37,535 nt of DNA from the IMG/VR virus record IMGVR_UViG_3300026885_000046, positions 1 through 37,535 of that record. One strand, written 5' to 3'. A program made the translations under genes and the position numbers. Positions 1,697-35,817 of this stretch are shown here, one piece after another. Position 1 is the first letter of the stretch. Each line of letters opens with the position of its first letter. The notes beneath the pieces were generated by a model. It was not told where the DNA came from, searched no databases, and was given only the letters and a program-made list of their open reading frames with translations.

Positions 1697-1930
1697 ATGA
1701 CATTTCGTAAAATAGATAACGGGGTAGAAATAAAATACGATAATGGTTATACAATCAAGATTAAGGTTGAAGGAGATAAGCTTAAGCTGAGGGAAGAATA
1801 TGAAGGTAGACCGTACACTGACACGATGTTTTACCTCTCGCCAAGCCAAGCGATCGAAATAAAAAAGGCATTGAAAGAAGCTAAAAGCGCAGATGACGTA
1901 TTGAAGCTGTTGCAGGGCGTTATGAGATGA
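1697..1930 (+). CDS. Hypothetical protein (77 aa)
   Basis: Track ORF 1565..1930; ATG 1697 fits the leaderless promoter spacing; ATGA overlap with the next gene. Confidence 0.75.
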   Translation: MTFRKIDNGVEIKYDNGYTIKIKVEGDKLKLREEYEGRPYTDTMFYLSPSQAIEIKKALKEAKSADDVLKLLQGVMR

Positions 1931-4900
1931 TTTATAGACCACATTTTACATATATTGTAGCAGACACTCCAAAACAAACGCAGGCTAGAGAGGCTGCTGC
2001 AAGCGAAGAATGGAGGAAAAGGCTCCTCCTAAGACCTTATGAGATTAGAACGCAACATGAGTCAGTAACGTCTATACCTAGAGAAGTAATAGTAAAGCTT
2101 ACACACCTTTCAACACATGAGCAAGAACCAATCGTTAACCCGCCAGCACATATAACCCTATTACGTATCATAAGGCCTCGTGAGAGTGAACAAGAACCAA
2201 ACCCGCCAGCACATGAACAAAGGCGTATCTATTTCTTTGGAGGATCTTCCCCTAATTTGCCTACCGACCTCCAGAAGCCTAGGCCGTTTATAACATATGT
2301 GCCTAATAGTTTTTGGGAGCAGATTACCCATAAGCAGGAAACAAACTCATCTGTTATACACCACACCGAAGGCCTTAGCCCGTGGGCACGTAGTCATATA
2401 GCAATGGCGCCTGGTGAAAGAACTCCAACACCTAAACTAACGCCGTTCGATCAGCTCCACATTGCAGCATCTGGTATCGAAGGGTCCCCAACACTGAATT
2501 CTGGTCCTGTAATACCACAACAAACCGTGCCAGTAACGATAGGAAGGACATTAAGTTATATACACCAAACTGAAGGTGTTAGTTCCTCACCACCACCTAG
2601 CCCCCCACCACAATCTTCACCACCAGCTAGCCACACATCTTCACAATCCAGTAACCCATTCGGCTTCTTCGGTTCCTTAGTCGGTTCATTTGTTAATGCT
2701 GTGACCAGCGCAGTAAGTAGAGGTAATAATTCGGGAGGAGGTCAATCAAATAACCCGCTCACGTCGTTCCTCAGCTCTGCTGCAAATGCCGTGTCTAGCG
2801 TAACAAATGCTATCGGAAACACAATAAGTCATGGCCAAATCGTTGCTAATGCTGCAACTTCTGGAGGCCAACCCAGTAACCCATTCGGTGCGATAGGTTC
2901 GTTCTTCGGTTCAATCGGCAGCGGCATAACTAATGCTGCGTCAACATTTGTTAGTGATGTAACTAATGCAGCGAAGAGTGTTGGCAATGCGGTACATAAC
3001 GTTGAGAACGCAGAAATTAATGCAGCAAAAGGTATCGGGAGCGCAGTAACTGGCGCATTATCAACTGCTGGGAAAGCAGTAACTGGCGCACTGACAGATG
3101 TCGGGAACACAGTAATTGGAGCACTTTCAGCTGCGAATAACGCGATACAGAACGCGTATAACTCTGCTTTCGGTAACCAAACCCAACAAGAGAAACAGCA
3201 ATTACAAAATCAGCTTAACCAGTTGAAACAGCAGGGACAACAAGAGTTGAACCAAATTAGCCAAGAGAAACAGCAGATACAGTCTCAGTTGCAACAAGTG
3301 CAGCAACAAGCTCAACAGGAATTAAACCAGGTTAATCAGGAAAAGCAACAAGTACAGTCTCAGTTGCAACAAGTCCAACAACAAGCCCAACAGGAGTTGA
3401 CTCAAATCAGTCAGAACGAACAACAATTACAGAACGCGTTACAACAAATACAACAATACCAAGCTCAAGCGATGCAGATGTTACAACAGAACCCTAACAA
3501 CCCGCAATTACAGAACTACTTACAACAACTGCAACAAGCTCAACAACAAGTAGAACAAGGACTGACCCAGTTACAACAAGAACAACAACAAATACAATCT
3601 CAGTTACAGCAAGCACAGTTACAAGGTCAACAAGAATTGGAACAACTTAACCAAGCTCAGCAACAAATACAGTCTCAGTTACAACAAGCTGAACAACAAG
3701 GTCAACAGGAGTTAACCCAACTTAACCAAGCTCAGCAACAAATACAGTCTCAGTTACAACAAGCTCAACAGCAAATACAGCAGGAGATGTCACAACTTAA
3801 CAAACAAGGACAAGGAGGTAACCCAATACAACAGTTCTTCAATGACGTTGCTGACGTTTCTGCGTTAGTAGGTTATTACGCTACCGAGGGGTTAGGAGGT
3901 GTAGGGGAGGAGTTAGCTCACGTTGTTCAAGGTAAAGGTCTTGAGAACTTCAGTCAAGCAGTTTCACAGTTCAACAAGGCTGGAGGGCAAAACATCGCTA
4001 GAGCTGTAGGTGACGTGACAGAAGTAGCGTTACCTGCAGTGGTTACTGCTGTCGTTGCACCGGAGTTGTTGCCGGCTGAGCTTATAGGCGAAACGTCATC
4101 GGTAGGTATCGGTGAAGTCGCCTCAAAGCTGACCACGGGTAAGTGGCAATCACTACCTGAGGTGCTTCAGGAGGCAAACGAGGGGGGCGTGTTAGGTGCT
4201 ATCGGTGAAGCAGGAGGTCTGGCGTTAGAGTCAGGTCTGGCGAAGGGGGCAGGAGCGTTAACGAAGCTATTAACAGGCAGTGAAGAAACCGCATCGAAGA
4301 TAGCAGGATTAACACCGGTATGGAGAGCAGCAGGTGGTGCTGAAGCAGGCGGTCTGGCGCTAGAGTCCAGCCTGGCGAAGGGGGCAGGAGCGTTAACGAA
4401 GCTATTAACAGGCAGTGAAGAAACCGCATCGAAGATAGCAGGATTAACACCGGTATGGAGAGCAGCAGGTGGTGCATTAACTAATACAGCATTACAGTTA
4501 CCTTTTACACAAAATCCCGAACAGTTAGCAATTGCCGGAATTGTAGGTGGTTTAGCAGGAGGACTGGGCCCTGGTGTAGCTGGTAAGCTGATGAGTAAAA
4601 TAGACGAAATTAGAGGAACTGGCGGTGTAGCGGAACTAGAGACGCTCAGATCTCCCCTCACTGGTGAGACCACAAAGGCGTGGAAGATAACGCTCCCTAA
4701 CGGAGACGTGTTACATTTAGTACCAAGAACTACGTTCGGTGAAGGAGATTTAGAGAGTTTCATAGACAGATACGTGAACGAAGTAGGCAAAAACAATCTG
4801 TTGGCTCACGTTACGCCGTCACGTAATTTCATTAAGGATGTAAAAGAAGGAGAAGTAGAAATAAAACCGAGCCAAAGTGCATCGGGAGACTGGGCATGGA

Positions 4901-6159
4901 GGATCCCTTCTAAAAATAACGAGTTCTACTTATCACCAGGAGAAGGTGAGCATGAGGCTGTAGCGTTAACAGGTTATACAGAGCTGAAGAGCACTGAACC
5001 AAGAGTGCCAGACTTTAGGTTGGGACAGTCAAGCGTAAGAAGGGTAATGGACAGGTTCTTACACCCATTCGACCAAGGTGGGATAATCCTGACACGTGGC
5101 GATATTGAAGTTGGTCCTACACCTCCGAGAGATCTGGTGGAGTATATCGCCCAGCTGAAAGCTAAATACGGAGGAGATAATAACGCAGTAATCAAAGAGT
5201 TATTGAGTAACCCCGAATACGGGCCGAAGTATATGGAATTTAGAAACGCGGTTAAAGAATTCAGTGCAGGAGAAGGGAAACCGGTAATAGGTTCTGAAGA
5301 CTTATTGGGCTTAAGTCACGAAAGACAAGCAATATTGTCAACTGGAGCGAAATTAAGGGGGACTGGTGAAGAGTACAACGTCTGGATAAGGCAAACACCA
5401 GAACTTCTAAAGAATTTGCCTGGGCCTTTACGTGACGTGTTATCTGACTGGTCGAGGCTGAAAGTCGTTGGTGCGGACATAATACCTGGTGAGCCCACAG
5501 ATTTGTTTAACGTAAACAAAGAGAACGAGAAAGGGTTGAGAGGTGAAAGGGAGTTCAAGGAGGAAGAGGAAATACCTGAGTTGAAAGAAGAGGAAGAGAG
5601 AGTACCTGAATCGGGAGAAGAGGAAGGGGAGTTGAAAGAACCAATATTACGAGAACCACTTTGGCCGGAACGTGAGCCACAACTAAGTGAGCCTCAGCTA
5701 GAGGACACGGGGTTACAGACATATACTTCACCTCCACGGGTCAATTATCCATCTCGTTCACCGATTGACAATCCGCAAATATTACCTCCACCTGCACCTT
5801 CACCTCCGCCTATCCGCTCACCTCCTATCAGTTCGCCACCTATCCGTTCACCACCACCTATCCGTTCGCCACAGATTAACTCACCACCGCCTATCAGTTC
5901 ACCTCCAATCAACTCACCAAAGATCTATTCACAGCCAATTTATTTACCTCCAACCTCAGTACCAGAGTACATAGAGATAGATTCACAATCATCGTCACCA
6001 CCCCCCGTGTTCTCTTCATCATCGATAACCGAAGGGGGATCATCAATACCAATGGGACCACCGCCAATGGTACCTTCGGTAATGCCAGGCGGATTTGGTG
6101 GGGGCGGTAACAACGTACAAGAAATTAGCGGAATGTCAGGTGAGGTAATATATCTATAA
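1927..6159 (+). CDS. 1410-aa multidomain protein: G/A/S-rich amphipathic region, Q-rich coiled coil, hydrophobic segments, globular domain, acidic and P-rich tail; probably virion-associated
   Basis: Long ORF with clear compositional domains; function inferred only. Confidence 0.8.
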   Translation: MIYRPHFTYIVADTPKQTQAREAAASEEWRKRLLLRPYEIRTQHESVTSIPREVIVKLTHLSTHEQEPIVNPPAHITLLRIIRPRESEQEPNPPAHEQRRIYFFGGSSPNLPTDLQKPRPFITYVPNSFWEQITHKQETNSSVIHHTEGLSPWARSHIAMAPGERTPTPKLTPFDQLHIAASGIEGSPTLNSGPVIPQQTVPVTIGRTLSYIHQTEGVSSSPPPSPPPQSSPPASHTSSQSSNPFGFFGSLVGSFVNAVTSAVSRGNNSGGGQSNNPLTSFLSSAANAVSSVTNAIGNTISHGQIVANAATSGGQPSNPFGAIGSFFGSIGSGITNAASTFVSDVTNAAKSVGNAVHNVENAEINAAKGIGSAVTGALSTAGKAVTGALTDVGNTVIGALSAANNAIQNAYNSAFGNQTQQEKQQLQNQLNQLKQQGQQELNQISQEKQQIQSQLQQVQQQAQQELNQVNQEKQQVQSQLQQVQQQAQQELTQISQNEQQLQNALQQIQQYQAQAMQMLQQNPNNPQLQNYLQQLQQAQQQVEQGLTQLQQEQQQIQSQLQQAQLQGQQELEQLNQAQQQIQSQLQQAEQQGQQELTQLNQAQQQIQSQLQQAQQQIQQEMSQLNKQGQGGNPIQQFFNDVADVSALVGYYATEGLGGVGEELAHVVQGKGLENFSQAVSQFNKAGGQNIARAVGDVTEVALPAVVTAVVAPELLPAELIGETSSVGIGEVASKLTTGKWQSLPEVLQEANEGGVLGAIGEAGGLALESGLAKGAGALTKLLTGSEETASKIAGLTPVWRAAGGAEAGGLALESSLAKGAGALTKLLTGSEETASKIAGLTPVWRAAGGALTNTALQLPFTQNPEQLAIAGIVGGLAGGLGPGVAGKLMSKIDEIRGTGGVAELETLRSPLTGETTKAWKITLPNGDVLHLVPRTTFGEGDLESFIDRYVNEVGKNNLLAHVTPSRNFIKDVKEGEVEIKPSQSASGDWAWRIPSKNNEFYLSPGEGEHEAVALTGYTELKSTEPRVPDFRLGQSSVRRVMDRFLHPFDQGGIILTRGDIEVGPTPPRDLVEYIAQLKAKYGGDNNAVIKELLSNPEYGPKYMEFRNAVKEFSAGEGKPVIGSEDLLGLSHERQAILSTGAKLRGTGEEYNVWIRQTPELLKNLPGPLRDVLSDWSRLKVVGADIIPGEPTDLFNVNKENEKGLRGEREFKEEEEIPELKEEEERVPESGEEEGELKEPILREPLWPEREPQLSEPQLEDTGLQTYTSPPRVNYPSRSPIDNPQILPPPAPSPPPIRSPPISSPPIRSPPPIRSPQINSPPPISSPPINSPKIYSQPIYLPPTSVPEYIEIDSQSSSPPPVFSSSSITEGGSSIPMGPPPMVPSVMPGGFGGGGNNVQEISGMSGEVIYL
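3175..3810 (+). repeat. Gln-rich imperfect 75-bp (25-aa) coding repeats
   Basis: QQIQSQLQQxQQQxQQELxQxxQ units repeated several times. Confidence 0.85.
4207..4476 (+). repeat. Near-perfect 135-bp (45-aa) tandem duplication
   Basis: 4207-4341 vs 4342-4476, EAGGLALES...VWRAAGGA twice. Confidence 0.95.
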
Positions 6160-6805: not shown

Positions 6806-7282
6806 ATGCAGTATCTAATCCTACTCTTACTCATATTTGCCGCAGTAGCCATTATCGTGACGTTGCTACCTTACGTAAGCCTCATAATAACGAGTATTAA
6901 CAACGTCAACGCACGTGTGTACACACTATACAATTCAAGCGTTTACATGAGCGGTACGTGGCTGGTTAACGGTAGCAAAATTCAGCAAGTCTCTACATCA
7001 CCGTCGAACAAGCTCGTTATTGAGGTAGCACAAGGTTCTTACGTTTATGTTTCTAACCAAACGTGGAGTGAGATGTTATCTGATAACGGTGATAACGGGC
7101 CTATATTCTCACCTTATGCGACGTTCAACCTCTCAGTTGGTTACTACAAGTTTAACATTCCTACGGAAGCTTTTGACTTCGAACGACCTGTTTACAGTGT
7201 GCTGTCGAGTCTGGCGTTCTTCTTAGCTGCTGCAGTGGTGTTTATCCTCTTTATGGTGTTGTCGTATAGCCGTAGAAGGTAG
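6806..7282 (+). CDS. Membrane protein (N- and C-terminal TM), putative virion protein
   Basis: Hydrophobic termini, N-x-S/T sequons, T-rich promoter at 6773-6783. Confidence 0.8.
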   Translation: MQYLILLLLIFAAVAIIVTLLPYVSLIITSINNVNARVYTLYNSSVYMSGTWLVNGSKIQQVSTSPSNKLVIEVAQGSYVYVSNQTWSEMLSDNGDNGPIFSPYATFNLSVGYYKFNIPTEAFDFERPVYSVLSSLAFFLAAAVVFILFMVLSYSRRR

Positions 7283-8829: not shown

Positions 8830-11800
8830 CCTATTTCTGCTCCTCATTCCCTTAGGAGTGCAAGCAGTGCAGTCTTTTCTGACATTTTACGTAAACGTTA
8901 TGGACTACGGTACAGTGCTTATGTTGCAGAATCAGAGTAACGTGTTAACGATTTACGAAATTCCGTCTTCCTTCTCCTCAGTGCCGTCGTTCCAAGGAGT
9001 ACAGACTACGGGAAAGGCGTTGGAGGCTGTTGAAAACGTTACATTGAAGAGCGGTGAGGTGGCACTCGTACATGAGTACGGAGTATCGGGCTTTTCGACA
9101 CAGAACTTCATTTACCAATACGTGAACGTACCAGGAATAGTTACATACTCTAACTCCACCACGTCCTATTATTCGTCTTCCACTATCTATGTAACACCAG
9201 ACTACGGCTACCAGTTACAGTTTACCCCGTTGTTCGGCATTCAAAACCAGCCCATAGATAGTGTGGAGTCAACGTCTTGGAGTGTGCTACCTTATTGGCA
9301 AAACGGTCAGTTAGTGATAAACAATCCTTATTCCATATCCGTGACAGTGACCAACTCGCAATCAATCGCTACTCCAGCCCCATTCGACCAGTTCTTAAAC
9401 ATAACAGAGTCACAGATAGCCTCAGCTTTAGGTTCCACTCCCGCATCCCAGTTATGGCAACAAGCAATGTCAGACCATTTCCTCAATTTACTGTTTCAGC
9501 AAAACGGACAAACGCTTTACGCTTGGGTACAAAATTACACTTCTTCATGGGTAGCGGTGTGGGTAAAACTACCTAACGGTATACCTGCGTCATCTTCAGT
9601 GACAATAACCATCGACTTCACGAACTCCATCCAATACCCTTACACTGGGATCTATTCAGCTGTCTACCCAGGTTACGATAACGGTGCAGATGTATTCATT
9701 CAGTACGGCTACTTCGGGAACCAGATACCTAGCGGGTGGACGACAGGCGTATATCAAGGATCTTTCAAACCAACGCCTACAGCGAATGGGCTAGAGATGA
9801 CAAATAATATTGCTAACGAAATGACTTACGTTTATGCATCGTTACCGAATACTAACGATTATACAGTTATCGTTTCGTGGTGGTATAGTGGCACATGTTA
9901 TGCGTTGAACCAGGAGTTATATGGAAACGTCCAATCTGTGACAACGTATTTTACATCATTTGCATCGGGGGGAATTACATTGGCAAGCGTTTTTGGTTTA
10001 AGTCAAATGTATGTTGCTAACGGATCTTATTATGAATCTGTAGGTGCGTTTGACGGTTCTGGTACACATTATGTTACAACATATTTCGCGATCCAGAGTA
10101 ATACCCTATATTATGGATACAGTAATCATAATTCACCGTTCCAGATAACATTACCATCTAGTTTTGGGTCTACTAGTCTAAAAACGAGTAGGAGTGCGCC
10201 GACAGTATTCATAGGTGCGGGATCACCATTCTCTAGTTATTCTGCCTACATATATCTAGATGTGGTGATCGTGATACCGACACCGCCCAATAACGTAATG
10301 CCGTCTATAACAAGTATTTCAACAAGCCTAGTAAGTGCTGGAGGCCAGTATATAGCCTGGGGGTATTCGCCAGTAAGCAACTCTATCAACGTCACCATCC
10401 ACGTTACATCGTTTCCATCAGCAAAGAGTAACGCTAGCATTGCCGTTTACTCGCCTAACGTAGGATACCAATCGACTGACGGTAATACTGGTTTTTACGC
10501 GTTATTTGTTGACTTCTACGGAGGTTCAATATACTTCCACTCCCCGACATCTAATAATTGGGTACAGCTCTACTCTTCTTTACCCCAACCTTCCACAGCA
10601 TACCCGTTCACCTTCACCGTCATCCTGACGGAGAACAGTGCCGGTAACGTCACCGTGTCCACCGTATACATCAACTCAACGGCTTACTCTGTCAATGTAA
10701 ACACTCCGTTCCCCTGGAGCCAGATAGGTTATGTTGGGATAAGGAGCGATGCCAACAACTTATTCTACGTCTCGTACTTCGCCGTATCCCCAGCACCCTA
10801 CGGCGGTGCAGAACAATTCGTGAACGACGCGGAGTCCGCGTCCTGGAAGGTGTTACCTTACTGGCAGAACGGCGAACTAGTAATAAACAGCATTGGGGCA
10901 AGTGCTGGAGGCCAGTATATAGCCTGGAGGTATTCGTCGATAAGGAACGTCATCAACGTTACCATTCACGTGGGAAGCTATCCTTCTAAAAGCACGTACG
11001 CAGGTATAGCGTTTTACAGCACGAGCCTGCAGAACTCCCCCTACTTTATGGTAGCATTTTACACCGGTGCTGTATACTATTTTACTGGCAGTAGTTCCAC
11101 TAGTCTCGCGACGTTCACGACGCCGAACCCTCCGTTCACAATGAGCATAATACTAGTTGAGAACTCTGCCGGTAACGTCACCGTACAAAGCGTCATAATA
11201 AACGGCACAACGACTTACAGCCTCAACACGAACGTGCCGTTCCCGTGGAGCCAGATCGCTTATATAGGGATAAGAAGCGACCCTGGCAACGTCTTCTATG
11301 TCTCATATTTCGGCGTCTCTCCTTTCCAGTACGGTATAGTCAAATACACCATTAATTCGGTCTCGTTACCTTCAATGCCCGATACTTCTTCAGCTACCGT
11401 CTTGATTTCTCAGCTCTCCAACGGCTCTTACGTCCTCCTCGGTATGTATAACGGGACGTGGCACGAGCTTAACCTACCGTTTACCAACCCCAGCGGAAAG
11501 TTCACAATCACGTTCAACCCAGTAGGTCCAGTGAACATAACGTTAAAGTCATCAAACGTCTTATCTTACGGTGCTTTGTTCTCTCCAGGTAACGGTGTGT
11601 TGTTGGAGGCTCAAAACGCTATACCCCCGTCAAACCCGACGAACTGGGAACCGTTAAGCTATGTGGGTACCAACGGAGAAGTAGGAGGAGGTGCTGATCC
11701 CACTTCACCTCAGTTCACTCCAGCTACACTTAACAGCATAAACTATTACCAGGGTGGTGCAATAGCAACAACGGATTGGGGTACCACGAACTTCACATAT

Positions 11801-21480: not shown

Positions 21481-21759
21481 TGTATCATATGCATTTACAA
21501 AATTATTTAACCCTCTAATTGCTTATGTGCAACAATAGTCTTATTGAATCGTCTTCTTGCTTTTGTGCATGTATAACTTTGTTAAGAGTATTATTTGCTT
21601 ATGTGCATAATAATAATTATTTAAAGTTTCCTTTGCTTATGTGCAAGACCGAGATTATTGATTTTTACTCTTGCTTTTGTGCAGAGGTCGACTTATTGGT
21701 GTTTTACATTGTTTATATGCATACACAGGTTTATTGATCTTTGTTTTTGCTTGTGTGCA
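21481..21759 (-). ncRNA. TIGR-like dual-repeat guide-RNA array 2 (orphan), 7 units, 38-nt period
   Basis: Plus-strand TTGCTTnTGTGCA (one variant) at 21519, 21557, 21595, 21633, 21671, 21709, 21747 (degenerate 21481), with a TTATTGA-like loop between two 9-nt variable segments. Confidence 0.88.
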
Positions 21760-34505: not shown

Positions 34506-35258
34506 AACAAAGGAATTTCTCAATAATTTCACCTTTGCACACCAGCAAGGGAGTACCTTTAGATTTAGATAATGTATAATATGCACGGTAGCAAAGTCCT
34601 TACTTAATAATGGACAGCATGCACATCAGCAAATAAGGATGTCAATAAATACAAATCTGCACAACAGCAAGATCATTACTCAATAAGGGGCAACATGCAC
34701 ATAAATATAGAAGGACTCAACAAACTCACTGTTGCACAGAAGCAAGCCTTTTACTCACTAATAATCGAAATGCACATAAGCAAGAAACTAACTCAATAAA
34801 GTAACTCTTGCATATAAGCAACAAATATCGTCAATAAAAAGTTGGATGCACACAAGCAAACAAGGCATTTAATAATTGAAATCTTGCACATAAGCAAGAA
34901 AACCTCTTAATAATATGTAGACTGCACATAAGCAACAAAAATGATCAATAATGTATATTCTGCACACTAGCAAGAAAAATATTCAATAAACTCCGCACTG
35001 CACACAAGCAAGAGCAAGAATCAATAAGTCTAATCTTGCACACTAGCAAGATCTGCACAGTAGCAAAAGTGGTGATCTAATAATCGCTCTATTGCACATA
35101 AGCAAGAAAAAAGTTCAATAAAATTTAAAATGCACACTAGCAATAAAGCGATTCCATAATTTAGCTATTACACATCAGCAAAATTGTTAATTTGATAAAA
35201 GTAATATTGCACACCAGCAAGGGGTTATTTCAATAAGGCGTCCCGTGCACATCAGCAA
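34506..35258 (+). ncRNA. TIGR-like dual-repeat guide-RNA array 1 (20 edge repeats, 38-nt period)
   Basis: TGCACAnnAGCAA at 34536, 34582, 34620, 34658, 34696, 34733, 34771, 34809, 34847, 34885, 34923, 34961, 34999, 35037, 35054, 35093, 35131, 35169, 35208, 35246; loop TCAATAA; paired 9-nt spacers. Confidence 0.92.
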
Positions 35259-35268
35259 AGGATATTAA

Positions 35269-35817
35269 TCAAAGGGAGAACGTAGCGGACTCAAGGATAC
35301 AGTTAATTTTTGTAAAGTATAACCTCTCGTTCTTGAAAACAACGTTTAGTGTCTTATACAAATCTGCAAGGGAGAAACGGTAATGCGGATATATTAACTC
35401 AGCTTTATAATATACAGCACATTCTCCGAAATCATCTTTAAAGAAAGAGGGTAAAACGGGGACATTCCCGAACGTTATCCCGGCGTATATATAACCGACG
35501 TTTATCCCCTCCTCAAGGTAAATATACCAGTTACCCAAATACAGTGCGTTGATATTCTTCACCACATACGGTTTTTCGATTGGTGCCATTACGTTATTTG
35601 TCCACCTCTTCAACGGTTCCGTTTTCGCGTCTTCCGAAACGATAAAGGCGTTAATAAACGACTTCGGCAGGACATCAACAACCGGTGGGACGTACTCTTT
35701 TCCCTCCCTTTCCGCAATTAATCGTGAGATCGTAACCTTCTGAGGCTGACCGTTTTTATAAGCAAACTCCCCTTTCAACACTTTTTCAACTACGTCCTTA
35801 AACATCATCCTGATCAC
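35269..35817 (-). CDS. Hypothetical protein
   Basis: 182-aa ORF in an operon with the ATPase. Confidence 0.7.
   Translation of the reverse strand: MIRMMFKDVVEKVLKGEFAYKNGQPQKVTISRLIAEREGKEYVPPVVDVLPKSFINAFIVSEDAKTEPLKRWTNNVMAPIEKPYVVKNINALYLGNWYIYLEEGINVGYIYAGITFGNVPVLPSFFKDDFGECAVYYKAELIYPHYRFSLADLYKTLNVVFKNERLYFTKINCILESATFSL

Follow-up and report, generated by a model that had tools for sequence, protein, structure and literature searches.

Two neighbouring guides of a Sulfolobales virus TIGR-Tas array match a cas6 operon, a candidate target for viral counter-defence

Two adjacent units of a TIGR array in a Sulfolobales virus, u11 and u12, were found to match a single cas6-containing operon in contigs of uncultured Sulfolobales, with spacer A and the reverse complement of spacer B separated by 2 and 1 nt, respectively. 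We lean towards the hypothesis that this viral TIGR-Tas system acts on its host through tigRNA-guided Tas, which would bind the DNA of the host cas6 operon and silence it, depriving the host of Cas6. A more specific form of this proposal, which we put forward tentatively, is that the TIGR-TasA of Sulfolobales viruses is an RNA-guided anti-CRISPR: the u11 and u12 tigRNAs would occupy the promoter/start and the 5' coding region of the Cas6 operon, and crRNA maturation would be shut down. The window (the whole 37,535-nt stretch of DNA analysed here) is IMG/VR contig IMGVR_UViG_3300026885_000046. Over most of its length it is collinear with Sulfolobales virus YNP1 (SYV1, 40.9 kb), at approximately 70-82% nucleotide identity, and the virus is related to Acidianus tailed spindle virus (ATSV). 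Its relevant features are:

33470..34501, plus strand: tas gene, 343 aa from ATG (the ORF as listed begins at GTG 33458)
34511..35258, plus strand: TIGR array 1, dual-repeat; partial first unit, 38-nt units, terminal edge repeat at 35246-35258
34809..35168, plus strand: block u8-u17 of array 1, nearly identical to 11324-11762 of the related contig L014, including the truncated unit TGCACACTAGCAAGATC
34923..34960, plus strand: unit u11, spacer A CAAAAATGA (34936-34944), spacer B TGTATATTC (34952-34960)
34961..34998, plus strand: unit u12, spacer A GAAAAATAT (34974-34982), spacer B ACTCCGCAC (34990-34998)
21487..21759 (reads 21759-21487), minus strand: TIGR array 2 (orphan); 7 edge repeats, 6 regular units

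Units of array 1 are made of a 13-nt edge repeat (TGCACAnnAGCAA), a 9-nt spacer A, the 7-nt loop TCAATAA and a 9-nt spacer B. Twenty copies of the edge were found between 34536 and 35258 (+), mostly spaced by 38 nt, and the loop was either TCAATAA or a one-letter variant. TRF analysis of the window returned a period of 38/76, and the repeat structure of array 1 is far beyond chance. A partial unit (AGGAATTTC / TCAATAA / TTTCACCTT) opens the array at 34511, with the tas stop codon 10 nt upstream. Some units are irregular, namely u1 and u5 (degenerate), u14 (truncated) and u15 and u18 (39 nt); 22 units over both arrays are usable. [quoted passage not shown] In the window, both spacers are preceded by AA (..GCAA and ..ATAA) and followed by T (TCAA.. 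and TGCA..), with a bias towards T at position 9 of spacer A and of spacer B; the CCA/UG motifs described for TasR are absent as such. Homologous arrays were found 3' of a homologous gene in more than 20 other contigs, and in most relatives examined the array starts 1-40 nt past the tas stop codon.

The locus belongs to the dual-repeat TIGR-Tas systems, a known type, since its Tas is 72-73% identical to ATSV gp16 and SYV1 gp71 and arrays with the same repeats lie 3' of both of these genes. The ATSV array (Hochstein 2016) was cited as an earlier example in the TIGR discovery paper (Faure 2025, Science, PMC12045711), whose supplementary text makes no mention of ATSV, SYV1 or the window contig. 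Alternating edge and loop repeats, two 9-nt spacers, an adjacent Nop-domain tas gene and a viral element are shared with the published systems and with the ATSV array, as is the guide geometry (A, 0-2 nt, reverse complement of B). The window differs from characterised TIGR-Tas in having units of 38 nt rather than the reported 36 nt, and two zinc-ribbon inserts in Tas. A CRISPR array was rejected: such arrays have one repeat of 23-50 nt, spacers of similar length and cas genes or a leader, whereas the window has two alternating repeats of 13 and 7 nt and 9-nt spacers, and Pfam detected no Cas family in the six ORFs next to the arrays. In the ATSV record, the second array of that virus carries the label 'possible viral CRISPR locus'. 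Archaeal box C/D sRNAs, which function with Nop5 and are marked by C (RUGAUGA) and D (CUGA) boxes, likewise combine a Nop-domain protein with RNAs carrying two short guides. In contrast to these, the window units have no k-turn boxes and their matches lie in double-stranded DNA, split between opposite strands, rather than in rRNA or tRNA; Rfam found no C/D family in 34300-35400, where the sole match was a sub-threshold Gut-1 (E 0.33), and this candidate was also discarded.

In TIGR targeting, the two spacers pair with opposite DNA strands, cuts fall 5' of the nucleotide that pairs with guide base 5 and leave 8-nt 3' overhangs, and gaps of 1-2 bp between the half-sites are tolerated (Faure 2025, PMC12045711). 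Working through this geometry indicated that 8-nt 3' overhangs arise only when spacer A and the reverse complement of spacer B lie on one strand; the targeting rule used in the original prediction was therefore correct. The 18-mers derived from it, 11 for array 1 and 3 for array 2, are all correct, each joining spacer A of a regular unit to the reverse complement of its spacer B. Eight usable units were absent from that list: five in array 1 (u6, u11, u15, u16 and u18) and three in array 2. Its statement that the window contains no perfect match also held: once the arrays were masked, no gap-0 site was found in the window at ≤3 mismatches, and the other arrangement (reverse complement of B followed by A) gave a single chance match with 3 mismatches. 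The gap-0 18-mers would miss the u11 and u12 sites, where the gaps are 2 and 1 nt.

A metagenome scan was carried out for one unit, u12, written as GAAAAATAT N{0,2} GTGCGGAGT and run without a positive control. It returned 67 contigs, and all but the cas6-operon matches look like chance; eight u12 matches with a gap of 2 correspond to one conserved coding motif (EKYWCGVMH) in unrelated contigs and were set aside as chance. When the 67 contigs were compared with ORFs from Sulfolobales elements, one stood out: L145, a 10-kb section of Ga0326758_100012 (237 kb; GC 0.40). The listed u12 site GAAAAATATGTGCGGAGT, which reads GAAAAATAT|GTGCGGAGT, is present there exactly, with a 1-nt gap, at L145 5307-5289(-). 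It is also exact, again with a 1-nt gap, at 2233-2251(-) of L124, a second contig of the same scan that is 97% identical to L145 over the target region. The site lies in frame at codons 80-86 of ORF214, the gene directly upstream of cas6.

Scanning L145 with a family set of 229 unique 9+9 units from 22 related contigs, which is independent of how L145 was found, yielded a sole further match at ≤1 mismatch. This match was to u11, the array unit directly before u12, at a distance of 440 bp from the u12 site and with a 2-nt gap (P = 0.03 for the one-mismatch matches in L145); a second u11 copy with 2 mismatches lies inverted 100 bp beyond the first. In L124, u11 is exact on both arms of this inverted repeat (2671-2690(-) and 2789-2808(+), 2-nt gap), approximately 450 bp from the u12 site. 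One arm is exact and the other carries 1 mismatch in L284, whose ORF214 is 68% identical, while the arms in L145 and L283 have 1-2 mismatches. The comparison of true with shuffled pairings, proposed along with the original prediction, separated the two clearly at this operon: with L145 left aside, the other five strain contigs gave 4 exact matches for true pairings against 0.027 for permuted pairings, and 6 one-mismatch matches against 0.15, each count being reached in 0 of 5000 permutations. Only the A-gap-reverse-complement-of-B arrangement matched at the target; the reverse order did not.

These matches could in principle be coincidental, the spacers drifting without external targets or the array serving as a decoy or structural RNA. 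Twenty units without a match, a chance-level outcome in every other collection searched and the lack of any difference between true and permuted pairings over 525 kb of mobile-element DNA from Sulfolobales would all fit this explanation. We nevertheless regard it as very unlikely, given that two adjacent array units account for three exact 18/18 sites within 575 bp of the 3.5-kb L124; no such site appeared in 200 dinucleotide shuffles, and by our own estimate the chance expectation for 229 units over 3.5 kb is <1e-4. Shared ancestry of the array and the host sequence was not credible either, because the two halves are separated by a repeat in the array and one of them is the reverse complement of its host counterpart. 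Neither L124 nor L145 contains edge or loop repeats that would point to viral array DNA in a chimeric assembly. At the u11/u12 sites, the co-occurring strains L283, L284, L286 and L145 carry 1-3 mismatches to the guides; in L286, obtained from the sample that also yielded the closest viral relative, the target site has the variant AAAAAATATgGTGCGAAAT. These mismatches could represent escape variants.

Outside this operon, the collections searched gave no site beyond chance for the 13 other listed sites and the 7 unlisted units, and a target search with the units of array 2 gave no site. The expectation that the TIGR rule applies to these arrays thus received support for u11 and u12, in the form of exact gapped sites, and the other 20 of the 22 units had no match beyond chance. 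Likewise, the suggestion of targets beyond the virus itself, such as host defence genes, stood for u11 and u12 at the Sulfolobales cas6 operon and found no such backing for the other 13 listed sites. Self-targeting or self-regulation was rejected: besides the negative result in the window, 253 kb of related genomes showed no excess of sites, true and permuted pairings being equal at 0-3 mismatches, with gaps of 0-2 and in both arrangements. Targets in competing viruses or plasmids, which had also been suggested, gained no support. True pairings equalled permuted ones in 525 kb of Sulfolobales elements, made up of these 253 kb and of 272 kb of other elements (SMV-type viruses, the rest of ATSV, STIV, SSV1, SIRV2 and a plasmid-like contig); the latter set had 4 scattered one-mismatch matches, where 1.4 were expected (P = 0.08). 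With 19 window targets, as ungapped sites only, BLAST against 50,697 GenBank phage and archaeal-virus records gave no archaeal-virus match, and an 18-nt positive control was recovered in this search. IMG/VR scans of u12, u8, u9 and u17, four window units that are identical in the relative L014, returned 2, 4, 17 and 5 matches, none of them related to Sulfolobales viruses. A unit found with spacers A and B exchanged in two relatives gave 74 matches in IMG/VR, again none related to Sulfolobales viruses. Against 185,579 GTDB species genomes, u8 had 51 matches, 50 of them bacterial and 1 in a Methanosarcinales bin, with 0 in Sulfolobales. Two further ideas were abandoned. Predicted targets did not tile into a longer source sequence in excess of shuffled pairings, and single 9-mers acting alone were not convincing (z = 0.8 for spacer A and 2.5 for spacer B against letter-shuffled spacers in family DNA).

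The matched operon consists of a small ORF (47-64 aa), ORF214, cas6 and a 90-aa ORF, in an order conserved in 5 contigs. ORF214 encodes 214 aa and ends 2 nt ahead of cas6 on the same strand. It contains a PDC...FEIK motif reminiscent of PD-(D/E)xK nucleases; PDB and Pfam profile searches gave no family or structure match, and its single-sequence structure model has a pLDDT of 33. It is cas6, as read from the sequence, that would give the operon a role in immunity. L145 carries two Cas6 genes (PADLOC E 1e-78 and 8e-81) as well as a VapC toxin gene, and the 237-kb contig has a housekeeping-type dehydrogenase. The named Cas6 homologues above 40% identity all come from Sulfolobus, Sulfurisphaera, Stygiolobus and Saccharolobus, at 45-53%. 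L286, with the target operon, and L021, with the Tas closest to that of the window (89% identical), were both obtained from JGI sample 3300045872, which indicates that the virus lineage and the target organism co-occur. From the Cas6 homology and this co-occurrence we infer that the target contig is an uncultured Sulfolobales genome and that its organism is a host of the window virus.

The two u11 arms, each approximately 22 nt long, are separated by about 100 bp of AT-rich DNA. The operon-facing arm contains the ATG of the small ORF and is preceded, at a distance of 26-33 nt, by a conserved TTTAAATA. Sulfolobales promoters have a TATA box about 26 nt upstream of the start, and many mRNAs are leaderless. 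Given this spacing, the u11 site would cover the transcription start. The arms are still conserved in L284 despite the divergence of the DNA between them, which suggests that the inverted repeat is an operator. A solitary TTTGGGCCATCAAGGAATTGAAAG was observed just outside the inverted repeat (L145:5907-5884, (-)), and it is also present in L124 and L283. Its end resembles the 3' end of Sulfolobales CRISPR repeats, and no second copy was found in the loci compared.

Comparison of relatives indicated that array units are inherited as modules, together with odd edge and loop variants, and are duplicated and reordered. The first two units (window 34536-34619) occur in opposite order at L023:3493-3570. 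The unusual edge TGCACAGAAGCAA and loop TCACTAA of u6 recur in L023 and L024, where the unit is found in two copies. These reordered and copied units led us to conclude that the arrays evolve by whole-unit duplication, reshuffling and point changes, and because units are inherited, duplicated and shuffled among relatives, some spacers may be drifting relics. Block u8-u17 differs from its counterpart in L014 at 4 of 162 spacer positions (counted from the alignment), u12 being unchanged and u11 carrying one change, in genomes whose tas genes are only approximately 76% identical; either a recent block exchange or selection on these guides would account for this likeness. The L014 array has extra units inserted within the block. 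A one-nucleotide shift of spacer B with the unit length kept was observed between homologous units L008:1380-1417 and L014:11286-11323 (ATGAGCAGT vs AATGAGCAG). In another contig, L007, the same eight units are found inverted at both ends of its 7.2 kb (1-328 and 6865-7192); this could have arisen either in assembly or by a genuine inverted duplication.

The unit with exchanged spacers, mentioned above for its IMG/VR scan, was found without any mismatch at L004:11269-11306 (A=AAAAATATT, B=AGTTACATC) and L022:8498-8535 (A=AGTTACATC, B=AAAAATATT). Shuffled pairings gave 0.08 such swapped pairs, even at ≤3 mismatches. Under the TIGR rule both units would specify the same double-stranded site, which fits strand-symmetric targeting of double-stranded DNA and hints that one site was captured or selected in both orientations.

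An explanation in terms of mobile elements was also considered, according to which the matches reflect spacer origin or competition between elements: the cas6-ORF214 module would sit on an integrated or mobile element, and the guides would be directed against this element, rather than against host immunity as such, or would themselves be relics. Several observations are in keeping with it. L145 carries MITE-like repeats in common with a contig of an ATSV-like virus in addition to its VapC toxin gene, spacer units are inherited, duplicated and reshuffled in the manner of neutral modules, and TIGR-Tas is also found on the conjugative-plasmid-like contig L220. We consider this explanation unlikely. 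ORF214 had 0 homologues in 50,697 phage and 72,556 plasmid records, and the contig is 237 kb long and includes the housekeeping-type dehydrogenase. Moreover, the sites fall exactly at the promoter/start codon and in the first large gene, a placement that fits regulation, and u11 and u12 have been kept in L014 at the tas divergence given above. The repeat element occurs as two copies in L145 (3613-3801 and 8530-8676) and again in the viral contig L251, with 61-62% identity when compared as a spurious translation; the element is probably a shared MITE. L220 (GCA_046533835.1, JAWDOM010000022.1) encodes a Tas homologue and a short array beside a TraG/HerA-like conjugation ATPase and an Eco57I-type methyltransferase, gene content which indicates that the TIGR-Tas family of the window also rides on plasmid-like elements. 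In the window itself, 77 bp at 32146-32222 share 97% identity with an element of Sulfolobus monocaudavirus SMV1 that is annotated as MITE-SMN2. A 1410-aa ORF (1927-6159), which aligns to an SYV1 gene annotated as a putative SbcC-like exonuclease, contains at 3238-3801 long, imperfect tandem repeats of 75 nt that are rich in CAA/CAG.

As a rule, SSV-type integrases recombine a site within the integrase gene with one in a host tRNA gene, and the SSV1 record annotates its integration site inside int. An integrase of this type, 86% identical to that of SYV1, is encoded at 710-1438 of the window, which raises the question of whether the guides help it to choose or bend an integration site near cas6. 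The idea has a precedent in the speculation that TasA aids integrases by bending DNA (Faure 2025, PMC12045711). We give it hardly any weight: the three sites are spread over approximately 575 bp, two of them form an inverted repeat round a promoter, unlike an attachment site, and no provirus junction was found in L145, L124, L283 or L284.

The outcome of guide binding at the cas6 operon would depend on Tas. An AlphaFold2 model built with 32 homologues (pLDDT 88) contains a coiled coil, two zinc-ribbon inserts, a helical Nop-like domain and a C-terminal loop. Its best Foldseek matches were TIGR-TasR (9mty), TasH (9w04/9w02) and the IS621 bridge-RNA recombinase, and a profile of 33 Tas homologues matched TaTasR (9mty_A, E 1.5e-4) over the IKGIGP helix-hairpin region. 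As modelled, the protein has a Nop-domain Tas fold. Pfam returned weak zinc-ribbon matches and nothing else, with no match to the Nop domain and no RuvC or HNH family. The zinc-binding residues of the inserts are invariant (C52/H56/C69/C72 and C161/C164/C188/D191), and the second insert lacks a conserved His or Asn of HNH type. Y292 and H298, which are also invariant among the homologues and fall in a C-terminal stretch of the model with lower confidence, are compatible with the Tyr/His dyad described on the C-terminal Tas loop for tigRNA processing. With no RuvC or HNH recognisable by Pfam or in the model, Tas was filed as TasA-like, that is of the nuclease-less type, with the reservation that the zinc-ribbon inserts may provide nuclease or other effector activity. 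Structurally studied TasA proteins use stem-loop arrays, whereas this TasA-like protein uses a dual-repeat array.

The same targets could be linked to a different outcome, in which Tas cleaves the cas6 operon or recruits a nuclease to it and the locus is damaged or deleted. TasR and TasH are nucleases that follow the same guide rule (PMC12045711), and the window Tas carries the two conserved zinc-binding inserts. The domain content of the model and the second insert both speak against cleavage, which we judge to be improbable. RNA-guided binding to the operon, probably with silencing, is the most likely role. Silencing is proposed because Tas has no recognisable nuclease domain and repressor activity has been reported for related proteins: nuclease-less TasA and dead TasR are RNA-guided repressors (Xu 2026 preprint, 10.64898/2026.09.09.750476).

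We propose the following course of events. The tas gene and array 1 are contiguous and would probably form one transcript, which would be cut into 38-nt tigRNAs with two 9-nt guides each. Spacer A would then guide a Tas dimer to one DNA strand and spacer B to the opposite one, on sites made of A, 0-2 nt and the reverse complement of B. The u11 tigRNA would direct the dimer to both inverted-repeat arms around the TTTAAATA promoter element, including the ATG of the small ORF, and the u12 tigRNA would direct it inside ORF214, the next gene, which is directly followed by cas6. A nuclease-less Tas complex bound to the promoter and the transcribed region would block transcription, and with the operon silenced the host would lose a Cas6 crRNA-processing enzyme, an effect that would amount to counter-defence. 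The other 20 units are presumably aimed at further sites in the host or in mobile elements.

The proposed system resembles the TasA and dead TasR repressors (Xu 2026) in lacking a recognisable nuclease and in having sites on a promoter/start and a transcribed region. Repression by those proteins was demonstrated with engineered targets in E. coli, whereas the case described here is a natural target proposed from sequence. It differs from TasR and TasH in that no fused RuvC or HNH domain is recognisable in the window Tas. Anti-CRISPR proteins of Sulfolobales viruses (the AcrID1 family, annotated in SIRV2) are also viral functions aimed at host CRISPR-Cas; they are protein inhibitors of a Cas effector, whereas the viral Tas would act on the DNA of the cas6 operon. 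Like the CRISPR arrays that viruses and plasmids carry against competitors or host defence, the guides are held in a viral array, but here no cas genes were recognised in the ORFs flanking the arrays, two repeats alternate and the guides are split.

The natural targets and roles of TIGR-Tas were stated to be unknown by Faure 2025 (PMC12045711) and in a preprint from the same laboratory (Xu 2026, 10.64898/2026.09.09.750476), and short spacers and the metagenomic origin of most loci were given as reasons for the missing targets (PMC12045711; 10.64898/2026.09.09.750476). Beyond the published systems, candidate natural sites with 1- and 2-nt gaps are now available for two guides; if they are true sites, natural TIGR targets carry gaps of 1-2 nt between their half-sites. 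The search recipe that worked was to allow a gap and to validate a match through the neighbouring array units. Its product is a concrete guide-target pair, two neighbouring viral guides and one operon with cas6, in strains from the same springs. This pair makes it possible to test viral TIGR-Tas as a counter-defence system, the silencing of natural promoters by TasA and the 1-2 nt spacing of half-sites. If the proposal is true, it would provide, as far as the literature searched shows, the first natural target and biological role for any TIGR-Tas system.
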